DNA from: Obrimoposthia wandeli
Taxonomy: Eukaryota
DNA length: 64,000 bases
Direction: 5' to 3'
NCBI GenBank assembly: GCA_977020255.1
Contig: CDROCS010005705.1
Coordinates: forward strand, 62,001-126,000
Shown here: positions 53,787-60,625 of the stretch, piece by piece
Layout of the letters: every line of letters starts with the position of its first letter
Position numbering within the stretch: position 1 is the stretch's first letter
Translations under genes and position numbers: made by a program
The notes under the pieces: generated by a model
Database searches by the model: none
What the model was told of the DNA's origin: nothing
What the model saw: the letters and a program-made list of their open reading frames with translations, nothing else

Positions 53787-54347
53787 ATGAGGCTGCTGTG
53801 TTTGGCAATACTTGTTCTAGCGGTTTTGTATGCAAAAAGTACGTATGCAAAAACAGATTCGCAGGCAAAGTCACGTGTTAACGACATTGACTCTATCATT
53901 ATACATTCAGTGGGTGGTCCTTATTGTAAAGATGGGCGGGTGCTTTTTAGTTCTGCCAGAAGTGGGCTATTATTTTGGCAGGGATTTTTCGCAAAACAGC
54001 CTGTCATTGGTATACATTACTTAATCGCGCGTGACGGCTCTATTGCAAGCAGTATTTCTGAGGCTAAGGTGGCCAATCATACCTTGGGCTGGAATTTACG
54101 GTCAATTGGCATTGAGTTGCTTAATGCGGGCGATGGTGTGGAGCCTTATTCGGATCTACAGATATCGTCCTTGATTGTGTTGGCTAAAAACATCATGGCA
54201 AGAAACCCGCAAATAACTGCAAAAAAGGTGTTAAGGCATTCTGACGTCGATAGCCGTTTTTTTGGCTGTGATGGCTTGCAAGTTAAGCGCAAGCAGGATC
54301 CAGGTGCTATGTTTGATTATCAAGCGTTCATAAAAGCTATCTCTTAG
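53787..54347 (+). CDS. Secreted N-acetylmuramoyl-L-alanine amidase (Amidase_2)
   Basis: Signal peptide; IIIH, HYLI..DG, SIGIEL, RHSD zinc ligands. Confidence 0.88.
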   Translation: MRLLCLAILVLAVLYAKSTYAKTDSQAKSRVNDIDSIIIHSVGGPYCKDGRVLFSSARSGLLFWQGFFAKQPVIGIHYLIARDGSIASSISEAKVANHTLGWNLRSIGIELLNAGDGVEPYSDLQISSLIVLAKNIMARNPQITAKKVLRHSDVDSRFFGCDGLQVKRKQDPGAMFDYQAFIKAIS

Positions 54348-54638: not shown

Positions 54639-54667
54639 TTGACTCTAGCAATGGATGCAAGTAGAAT
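54639..54667 (+). promoter_or_regulatory. S10 operon promoter
   Basis: TTGACT-17bp-TAGAAT plus discriminator TTGCGTCCC. Confidence 0.85.
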
Positions 54668-54735
54668 TTGCGTCCCTTTCTAAGAGAGGGAGGCAGTTCG
54701 CTGTCTTACTTAAACTTAAATTAAGTGTGATCAGA

Positions 54736-55047
54736 ATGCAAAACCAGAAAATCAGAATACGTCTGAAAGCGTTTGATCATCGCCTGATCGACACCTCAGC
54801 GCAAGAAATCGTAGATACTGCGAAGCGTACAGGTGCCCAGGTGCGTGGTCCGATCCCTCTTCCTACTCGCAAAGAGCGCGTAACAATATTGACTTCACCG
54901 CATGTAAACAAAGATGCACGTGATCAATACGAAATACGTACTCATAAGCGCGTTCTAGACATTGTTGAGCCAACTGAAAAAACGGTTGATGCCCTAATGA
55001 AACTAGATCTTGCTGCAGGTGTGGAAGTTCAGATTAGCTTAGGTTAA
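54736..55047 (+). CDS. rpsJ: 30S ribosomal protein S10
   Basis: [15 protein letters not shown]; true start 54736. Confidence 0.99.
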
Positions 55048-55082
55048 TCAACGCGCTCAGAATATTCATAATGAAGCGCTAT

Positions 55083-55136
55083 TTGTGGAAGGCTCCTGAA
55101 ATGGGTCACCGTAGTGGGTTACAGTCCCGTACACAA
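55083..55136 (+). promoter_or_regulatory. Candidate cis-regulatory RNA mimicking 23S rRNA helices 18-20
   Basis: 23/26 identity to 41685..41710 plus a conserved three-way-junction layout; directly before the rplC SD. Confidence 0.75.
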
Positions 55137-55155
55137 CTGGCAAGAGGTATATAAA

Positions 55156-55794
55156 ATGTCTGTAGGTTTAATCGGACGAAAAGCGGGTATGACTCGCGTC
55201 TTCACTGAAGATGGCGTATCCGTGCCAGTCACGGTCATCGAGGTGGATCCGAACCGTGTTACACAGGTTAAAACAGCTGAAAACGATGGTTATCAAGCTA
55301 TTCAAGTGACTACTGGTACAGTAAAGGCGAATCGCCTTACTAAGCCAAAAGCTGGTCACTATGCTAAAGCTAACGTTGAAGCGGGCCGCGGTTTATGGGA
55401 GTTCCGCCTGTCGGGTGATGAAAGTATCAACGTTGGTGATTCACTAACAGTTGAGCGCTTTGAGGTTGGTCAGAAAGTTGATGTTACTGGAACGTCTAAA
55501 GGTAAAGGCTTCCAAGGTGGTGTTAAGCGTTGGAATTTCCAAATGCAAGACGCTACACACGGTAACTCACTATCTCACCGTGCCCCAGGTTCTATCGGCC
55601 AATGCCAAACACCAGGTCGTGTTTGGAAAGGCAAGAAAATGGCAGGTCAAATGGGTAATGTGCAAAGTACTGTGCAGACTCTAGAAGTTGTGCGTGTAGA
55701 CGCAGAACGCGGCTTGTTATTGATCAAAGGTGCTGTACCAGGTTCGACTGGCGGTGACGTAATCGTTAAACCAGCTGTTAAAGTTGGCGCCTAA
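55156..55794 (+). CDS. rplC: 50S ribosomal protein L3
   Basis: [21 protein letters not shown]; start 55156 after SD AAGAGGT. Confidence 0.99.
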
Positions 55795-55805: not shown

Positions 55806-56411
55806 ATGAACCTAAATCTAACTGGAACTACAGGATCGGTCGAAGTATCCGATGCTACGTTCGGTAAGGACTTTAACGAGGCGCTTGTTCATCAAGTTGT
55901 TACAGCTTATTTAGCTGGTGCTCGTCAAGGTACTAAAGCACAAAAGACTCGTTCAGACGTTTCTGGTGGTGGTGCTAAGCCATTCCGCCAAAAAGGTACT
56001 GGTCGTGCACGTGCTGGTACGATTCGTTCGCCAATCTGGCGTTCAGGTGGTACTACATTTGCTGCGCGTCCTCGCGATTTTAGCCAGAAAGTAAACAAGA
56101 AAATGTACCGTGCTGCGATGCGTTGTATCTTGTCTGAGCTAATTCGTCAAGAACGTCTTGTAGTAGTAGAAAGCTTCTCAGTAGACGCGCCAAAAACTAA
56201 GCAATTCATCGCTAAGATGGAAGAGTACAGCTTACAAAATGCGCTTCTGATCACCGAAGATGTTGAAATTAACTTGTACCTTGCTGCACGTAATGTGCCG
56301 CATGTTGATGTTCGCGATGCTGCTGGTATTGATCCAGTAAGCTTAGTTGGCTTCGATAAAGTGTTAGTTACGGTCGCTGCTTTGAAGAAAATTGAAGAGG
56401 TGTTGTCATGA
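55806..56411 (+). CDS. rplD: 50S ribosomal protein L4
   Basis: [14 protein letters not shown]. Confidence 0.99.
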
Positions 56412-60210: not shown

Positions 60211-60310
60211 ACCTCAGTTCAAATAACTGAAGTTTTTTTAAAACGCCAATTCCGCAAGGTCTTGGCGTTTTTCGGCATGAGCAGGTAGTAGGAAACGATA
60301 AAGGTGTATT

Positions 60311-60625
60311 ATGCGTAAGATTAAAGGTAGTGACGAAGTAATCGTTATTGCAGGTAGAGACAAAGGAAAGCGCGGTAAAGTTATGCGCATCCTAGAAAAC
60401 GATCTATTGATCGTTTCTGGTATCAACATGGTGAAGAAGCACACTAAGCCTAACCCACAAGCTCAACAGCCGGGTGGAATAGTAGAGAAGGAAGCGACTA
60501 TTGCTCTTTCTAACGTTGCGATCTTCAATCCTGCCACTGGCAAGGGTGACCGTGTTGGCTTCAAGAAACTTGAAGATGGCACTAAAGTTCGCTTCTTCAA
60601 ATCTAACGGCGAAGTCGTCGCTTAA
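60311..60625 (+). CDS. rplX: 50S ribosomal protein L24
   Basis: [14 protein letters not shown] motif. Confidence 0.99.

Follow-up and report, generated by a model that had tools for sequence, protein, structure and literature searches.

The window analysed here is a 64,000-nucleotide (nt) stretch of DNA from assembly GCA_977020255.1 (Obrimoposthia wandeli; contig CDROCS010005705.1, positions 62,001 to 126,000), and it contains the S10 ribosomal protein gene cluster of a bacterium. Between rpsJ (S10/NusE) and rplC (uL3) of this cluster lies a 108-nt spacer, which carries an RNA element mimicking the three-way junction of helices 18, 19 and 20 (H18-H20) of the organism's own 23S ribosomal RNA (rRNA). 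The element is conserved, shows covariation, occupies a set position immediately upstream of the rplC start and recurs in many genomes of one bacterial order. On balance, we favour the view that the rpsJ-rplC spacer is an internal autogenous translational operator, at which free uL4, possibly helped by uL24, would block the initiation of rplC translation.

The element (coordinates of all features are given in Table 1) reads TTGTG-GAA-GGCTC-CTGAAAT-GGGTC-ACCGTAGT-GGGT-TACA-GTCC-CGTA-CACAA, and its counterpart within the 23S rRNA gene of the window (41375-44274) reads GUGGAA-CAAGC-UGGGAA-GCUUG-GCCGUAGU-GGGU-GAUA-GCCC-CGUA-CAC. This mimicry had been proposed in a sequence-only reading of the window, and both sequences are as quoted there, with 23 of the final 26 nt of the element identical to 23S. 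When the window was searched with this 26-mer, allowing up to three mismatches, only the spacer and the 23S site were found (0.00 matches expected from 100 shuffles). A covariance model trained on 51 rpsJ-rplC spacers alone, with no rRNA included, likewise matched the 64 kb twice: the best score was that of the spacer (65 bits, E 3e-18), and the second, 61.9 bits (E 3e-17), was that of the 23S site. The Rfam model of large subunit rRNA also reaches the Marinomonas copy of the element, at model positions 311-388 and below threshold. In the 23S gene of Escherichia coli the same model aligned GUG...CAC to nt 295-343 in helices 18-20 (38.1 bits), which is the region that the sequence-only reading had named as an L4/L24 site. 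These nucleotides fall within the 281-359 fragment, i.e. the H18/H19/H20 three-way junction, a primary binding site specific for uL4 and uL24 only (Geffroy et al., PMC6426284).

The three-helix structure, consisting of P1 (H18 mimic), P2 (H19 mimic) and P3 (H20 mimic) connected by three joining strands, was imposed on an alignment of 51 distinct spacer copies and later on a set of 77 distinct sequences. In this structure 90-92% of the alignment cells were paired and eight pairs showed changes on both sides. The covariation score was 0.243-0.247, compared to 0.13 in shuffled alignments (0.136 for the higher score), none of which (0/500) reached it, and it did not exceed 0.10 in slid controls with the 3' partners shifted by 1-3 columns. 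All of the covariation resides in P2, with double-sided changes in five of five pairs and pairing in 97.3% of cells. Each prediction of the sequence-only reading that was open to computation was borne out, compensatory change in the variable helix among them. Two further statements of that reading also held: the first helix differs in sequence from its rRNA counterpart but still pairs (G-C, G.U, C-G, U.G and C-G in the window), and the outer stem is closed by TTGTG/CACAA, with 5 nt between it and the rplC Shine-Dalgarno (SD) sequence. P1 (GUG/CAC) is paired in all 77 distinct sequences and the core is nearly invariant. The P3 stem (GGGU/GCCC) is invariant and hence uninformative on pairing, while its loop is variable and may be enlarged by inserts of up to 35 nt; the size of P2 ranges from 3 base pairs (bp) up to insertions of more than 40 nt.

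Contigs from RNA libraries spanning rpsJ, the spacer and rplC were found in four runs from three studies. They include a strain ∼97% identical to the window, in which 55093 C>U and 55105 G>A together convert a C-G pair into U-A, and 55092 G>A converts a G.U pair of P2 into A-U. Some members of the family carry insertions of 37-46 nt in the P2 loop or of 29-35 nt in the P3 loop, the latter folding into a hairpin of their own. Such large inserts imply that both loops point away from any junction binder.

The family consensus of the 51 distinct copies is GUG(U/G)AA, a variable hairpin, GCC(A/G)UAGN, GGGU-loop-GCCC, CGUA, CAC and the SD sequence. When mRNA and 23S copies were compared within the same genomes, they proved to share the joining strands together with the base pairs flanking them, which are nearly invariant in the family, and the ACCGUAGU-type joining motif was also present in the 23S rRNA of Pseudomonadales. 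In contrast, the loops of H19 (CUGGAAAG) and H20 (GAUA) are constant in rRNA and freely variable in mRNA, whereas the closing pairs of H18 covary in rRNA (GUG/CAC, GUA/UAC, GCG/CGC, GAC/GUC) and are held as GUG/CAC in mRNA. As judged from this pattern, conservation fits protein binding better than rRNA function, the retained parts being those that a junction-binding protein would see. Each of five genomes checked has one mRNA copy in addition to its rRNA copies. Gene conversion with the genome's own rRNA was considered and rejected, as the mRNA and rRNA copies differ in a lineage-specific manner. In Halomonas, for instance, 23S has the E. coli-like GCGAUACAGGGU and GAC/GUC, but the mRNA of the same genome keeps GCCAUAGCGGGU and GUG/CAC; the likeness is therefore not a product of recent gene conversion or homogenization. 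The variable N in GCCAUAGN equals the genome's own rRNA in 8 of 21 genomes, compared to ∼5 expected.

A hairpin located upstream of the junction, P0, belongs to the same conserved unit. Of 45 relatives, 43 have such a hairpin with an energy of -6 kcal/mol or lower; its sequence is unrelated between taxa, and its end lies a median of 2 nt before P1. In Pseudomonas-type genomes P0 takes in the rpsJ stop codon and covaries. Downstream of the junction, a linker between P1 and the SD (AACUGGCAA, 55135-55143) is conserved in sequence in the subgroup to which the window belongs (JAM-7, Amphritea, Marinobacterium, Marinomonas and Njordibacter), and is missing in other families, where the SD directly adjoins P1.

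To describe the distribution of the element, loci of uL3 relatives were collected with one genome per species, which gave 80 loci and, with the window, 81 rows. The element is present upstream of rplC in 63 of them. According to the record titles, its carriers comprise Amphritea, Marinobacterium, Marinomonas and Thalassolituus (Oceanospirillaceae-type), Halomonadaceae, Endozoicomonadaceae, Pseudohongiellaceae, Saccharospirillaceae, Porticoccaceae, Cellvibrionaceae, Microbulbiferaceae, Spongiibacteraceae, Halieaceae and Njordibacter. Among the same loci it was not found in Vibrio, Photobacterium, Idiomarina, Aliidiomarina, Erwinia, Thioalkalivibrio and a few unclassified genomes. Spacers lacking the element are mostly 10-52 nt long, with Thioalkalivibrio (134 nt) and one unclassified genome (190 nt) as the long exceptions.

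A second model, comprising the element and the first 57 nt of rplC, was used to tell mRNA from rRNA matches. In a sample of the order of Halomonas, 106 of 151 genomes gave full matches (81-141 bits); the next scores were at most 66 bits and represented rplC without the element, or 23S. In a sample of the class (151 genomes) the centre genome alone matched, and in a sample of the phylum (151 genomes) there were 11 strong matches, eight from the order sample and three with a Pseudomonas-type element. The element was found in no sampled genome outside the order. Three of the genomes that match the model contain RsmY above the Rfam threshold, and their uL3 begins with MTIGVVGRK. RsmY is a small RNA of the Pseudomonas family and serves here to mark genomes as Pseudomonas-type. 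The similar spacer that the sequence-only reading mentioned for Pseudomonas is thus matched by these genomes, and its suggestion that the element is clade-wide agrees with the order sample. On a uL3+uL4 tree, the presence and absence of the element require four changes, and a single origin may be envisaged.

Loci with and without the element also differ in the leader of rpsJ. In the window this leader is only ∼60-70 nt long, counted from the promoter-like site, and no terminator-like site was detected on the + strand between that site and rpsJ; in other element-bearing genomes the promoter lies 55-95 nt before rpsJ. Nine of the ten element-less genomes of the order that were examined have an rpsJ leader of 145-190 nt with an HD-like hairpin (loop GGCAnYGUUC), then a second hairpin whose U-run lies 29-49 nt upstream of the rpsJ start, and finally CUGGAGUU...AUG, an architecture shared with the leaders of E. 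coli, Vibrio and Erwinia. The HD-like motif was found at 7 of 26 loci without the element and at 0 of 71 with it, and a hairpin with a U-run at -90 to -15 at 19/26 and 22/71, respectively; the features confined to element-less loci are the HD-like motif and the long leader alone. All E. coli-type leader loci examined (Vibrio, Photobacterium, Erwinia, Idiomarina and nine Pseudomonadales genomes) lack the element. It seems that the element and the E. coli-type leader replace each other within the order, the association being strong but not absolute. The occurrence of full-length L4 leaders in Moraxellaceae and in no Pseudomonadaceae (Fu et al. 2013, PMC3616713) fits this pattern. One genome with an E. 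coli-type rpsJ leader keeps in its rpsJ-rplC spacer a hairpin, CACUCUGGUUAGAGUGG, resembling H19/P2 and followed by an A/U-rich stretch; this may be a decayed remnant of the element.

How such an operator would work can be outlined as follows, binding, repression, the acting protein and the escape of rpsJ being what we infer here. During 23S rRNA synthesis, ribosome assembly would take up newly made uL4. Surplus uL4 would then bind the mRNA copy of its primary site, with uL24 possibly alongside in a cooperative manner, and the bound, clamped junction would prevent or trap 30S initiation at rplC. In 51 relatives the element ends 12-24 nt (median 15) before the rplC AUG, and an SD-like tetramer lies 0-4 nt past CAC in 39 of them and 9-11 nt past it in the other 12. 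As the junction ends 0-11 nt before the SD and 12-24 nt before the AUG, its clamped form would be expected to hinder 30S initiation. From rplD through rpsQ repression would be passed on by translational coupling, since the intercistronic gaps between rplC and rpsQ run from an overlap up to 18 nt in the window (by spacing of open reading frames); Rho-dependent polarity might add to it. The rpsJ gene would escape direct repression because it lies upstream, across 108 nt. A protein clamped on the junction would sit within the 30S binding region and, by analogy with the S7, S8, S15 and L1 operators, the likely mode is translational repression by exclusion or entrapment. Reading the element as an attenuator was rejected, since no U-run or terminator-like site follows it in the window.

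Of the two candidate ligands we favour uL4. It is the known repressor of the S10 operon, its site in the E. coli leader competing with the 23S site (PMC10931766), and it is encoded just downstream of the element. It also binds the isolated 281-359 fragment ∼25 times more tightly than uL24 (Ka of 1.5 per µM and 0.06 per µM, respectively, with ∼6-fold cooperativity; PMC6426284). Finally, the H19-H20 joining strand, which from the text of PMC6426284 we infer to be contacted by uL4 and not by uL24, is the most invariant one in the mRNA.

Several observations weigh against the operator reading. The window spacer alone folds no better than its shuffled versions (z +0.99 in thermodynamic folding), so the structure rests on covariation and not on energy, and protein or tertiary contacts may be required for the junction to form. 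In the first joining strand most members have U where rRNA has G (GUGUAA vs GUGGAA). Family-level statements rest on locus titles and the RsmY marker, and the RNA-library data are assembled contigs, with no readout of transcript ends or levels. Strict exclusion between the element and a leader terminator was not upheld, as the leader hairpin with a U-run at nearly a third of the element loci shows that the separation of the two devices is incomplete.

The alternatives differ in the ligand, in the use of the structure and in its history. It is conceivable, if doubtful, that uL4 and uL24 form a two-protein sensor which clamps the mRNA junction cooperatively, as on nascent 23S, and that a piece of the organism's own rDNA was copied into the operon and reused, displacing the E. 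coli-type leader or being displaced by it within a single order. If so, translation from rplC to rpsQ would be coupled to the initial step of 50S assembly, i.e. to the availability of the naked 23S 5' domain, and the rDNA copy would directly illustrate the origin of rRNA-mimicking operators. We think it unlikely that the effective ligand is uL24 instead of uL4, or that both proteins must bind, with the operator reporting free 23S 5' domain for the initiator of 50S assembly and thereby linking the spc and S10 clusters. The H18-H20 fragment is indeed the primary site of uL24, whose contacts outnumber those of uL4 and whose binding is cooperative (PMC6426284), conservation in the mRNA extends to all three junction strands, and in the window rplX (uL24) is preceded by an unusual 100-nt spacer with two terminator-like hairpins. 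However, uL24 is the weaker binder of the isolated fragment by the factor given above, its gene does not directly follow the element, no regulatory role of it is known whereas uL4 is the established regulator of the operon, and the joining strand J1/2 (GAA in rRNA) reads UAA in most members.

A slightly poorer chance still is given to a structure that folds, or even binds uL4 or uL24, but exerts no feedback, acting instead as an mRNA processing or stabilizing element, a standby or enhancer site, or an uncoupler of rplC and rpsJ translation. P0 and the junction do form a compact structured block directly past the rpsJ stop codon, the 108-nt gap uncouples the two genes, and the RNA-library contigs show no more than the presence of the region in RNA preparations. 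Yet a stabilizer or spacer has no need of near-identity, across the order, to the junction strands of one rRNA protein site, and would not explain a distribution largely complementary to that of the E. coli-type L4 leader. Least of all do we believe in a neutral relic of an rDNA fragment or an artefact of assembly or annotation. The high sequence likeness to rRNA does suggest that the element descends from an rRNA copy. However, more than 100 species have it at one and the same location, where compensatory changes, a constant distance to the SD and a selectively preserved junction are observed; it does not follow the rRNA of the genome in which it lies, and it is present in independent assemblies and in RNA-library contigs.

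The feature coordinates given by the sequence-only reading stood for the element and required small corrections for rpsJ and the rplC start, with P0 added upstream.

Table 1. Features of the rpsJ-rplC element, its rRNA counterpart and the surrounding genes (positions in the window)
Feature	Position	Strand	Remarks
Original 23S rRNA H18-H20 junction, same organism	41662-41710	+	
Promoter-like site of the S10 operon, TTGACT-17-TAGAAT	54639-54667	+	
rpsJ (S10/NusE)	54736-55047	+	Pfam Ribosomal_S10, 2.4e-36
P0 upstream hairpin, GCGCUCAG...UGAAGCGC	55053-55079	+	Belongs to the conserved unit
Three-way-junction element (P1, P2, P3, three joining strands), mimic of 23S H18-H20	55083-55136	+	
P1 5' strand UUGUG (H18 mimic) and joining strand GAA	55083-55090	+	
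P2 hairpin GGCUC-CUGAAAU-GGGUC (H19 mimic)	55091-55107	+	
Joining strand ACCGUAGU (family consensus GCCAUAGN)	55108-55115	+	Most conserved single strand, invariant alignment columns
P3 hairpin GGGU-UACA-GUCC (H20 mimic)	55116-55127	+	
Joining strand CGUA and P1 3' strand CACAA	55128-55136	+	
rplC Shine-Dalgarno AAGAGGU	55142-55148	+	5 nt past P1 (spacer CTGGC); rplC ATG at 55156
rplC (uL3)	55156-55794	+	Pfam Ribosomal_L3; first cistron under the proposed control
rplD (uL4), proposed repressor	55806-56411	+	Pfam Ribosomal_L4, 2.9e-69
rplX (uL24), possible co-ligand, spc cluster	60311-60625	+	Pfam ribosomal_L24

By the spacing of open reading frames, rplD starts 11 nt past rplC, ∼650 nt downstream of the element, and overlaps rplW; the remainder of the S10 cluster continues past rplD. 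Upstream of rpsJ an Amidase_2 (AmpD-like) gene (53787-54347) occupies the place of tufA, so that the S10 cluster has its own promoter in this organism. The short rpsJ leaders of element-bearing genomes (54668-54735 in the window) open with a conserved GCGC/GCGU-CC-UUUU and a small hairpin (UCCCUUUCUAAGAGAGGGA in the window), which is followed by a U-run in the Cellvibrio-like and Halieaceae groups. The rplN-rplX spacer (60211-60310) contains, in tandem, two terminator-like hairpins with U-runs, CUCAGUU...AACUGAAG-UUUUUUU and AACGCCAA...UUGGCGUU-UUU, which may constitute an attenuator within the spc cluster.

The window is a bacterial contig in an assembly of 1.35 Gb and 6912 contigs, and is therefore of symbiont or contaminant origin. 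Its uL3+uL4 sequences group with those of Amphritea, Marinobacterium and 'Pontibacter sp. JAM-7' (support 100/99); the last record is labelled Bacteroidota, yet is clearly placed among these gammaproteobacteria.

The sequence-only reading had left prior description of the element to be checked, and none was found. In Rfam 15 no family matched the window spacer, even at E-values up to 10, or the loci of five relatives (Pseudomonas-type, Halomonas, Microbulbifer and Marinomonas). The large subunit (LSU) rRNA models (RF02541 / RF02540) gave 35.3 bits for the Marinomonas copy (model positions 311-388) against a threshold of 50, and an LSU rRNA gene or fragment was thus ruled out, the score being below the family threshold. 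An E. coli-type S10 leader was ruled out as well, since the element lies 3' of rpsJ and the leader of the window is short and has no terminator-like site. No description was found in the literature searched, which does not cover all journals, and the element is absent from the surveys of Fu et al. 2013 (PMC3616713), Eckert and Weinberg 2020 (PMC7247131) and Weinberg et al. 2010. It has three attributes of the ribosomal protein leader (r-leader) class, being located in a ribosomal protein mRNA next to the ribosome-binding site, having a covariation-backed structure and resembling the site that an operon-encoded protein has on rRNA. Pipelines that mask rRNA-like sequences may have hidden it.

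The absence of the E. coli-type L4 site from Pseudomonas has been known since 1999 (PMC3616713, PMC10931766). Control by uL4 has been shown in enterobacteria, Haemophilus and Vibrio, not in Pseudomonas, and a 2024 review lists no alternative (PMC10931766). The element is probably the missing feedback switch of the S10 operon in Pseudomonas and its relatives; it offers a concrete candidate for this control in most of the sampled Pseudomonadales (Pseudomonas-type, Halomonas, Marinomonas and Cellvibrio-like). Ten ribosomal protein genes may in this way be tuned apart from S10/NusE. As a natural minimal substrate, the element also lends itself to studies of how uL4 and uL24 recognize RNA, and it can serve as a case study of operator origin. 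To our knowledge, there is no closer sequence-level copy of an rRNA protein site in an mRNA.

Among known systems, the E. coli-type S10 leader (Zengel and Lindahl; PMC3616713) shares with the element the operon, probably the effector uL4, and the logic of competition between mRNA and 23S for free uL4. It is located 5' of rpsJ, comprises ∼170 nt and five hairpins, combines NusA-dependent attenuation with translational control, and has a secondary structure unlike the rRNA site. The element, in contrast, is located 3' of rpsJ, comprises ∼55 nt (∼85 if P0 is counted) and lacks a terminator, and its sequence as well as its fold reproduce the rRNA site. A candidate L4 r-leader of Archaeoglobi (Eckert and Weinberg 2020, PMC7247131) is also found directly upstream of rplC-rplD-rplW-rplB with L4 as the proposed ligand; however, it is archaeal, unrelated in structure, rated uncertain, without reported rRNA mimicry, and has no Rfam match to the element.

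Compared to the 23S H18-H20 junction itself (nt 281-359, PMC6426284), the element has the same topology, joining-strand sequences and GGGU/GCCC stem, but its H18 mimic is only 3-5 bp long, its H19 and H20 loops are variable, and an SD sequence and start codon follow. In its placement it is comparable to the operators found within the str and spc operons (for S7 between rpsL and rpsG, for S8 at rplE; PMC10931766, PMC2704228), which likewise lie inside a polycistronic ribosomal protein mRNA at the start of a later cistron, resemble the rRNA site of the protein concerned and spread repression downstream by translational coupling, as we propose for the element. They respond to other proteins and imitate 16S rRNA sites, and none is as near to its rRNA model in sequence. 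On the sequence evidence, the element would thus represent a new class of RNA at a new position, exerting a familiar type of feedback.
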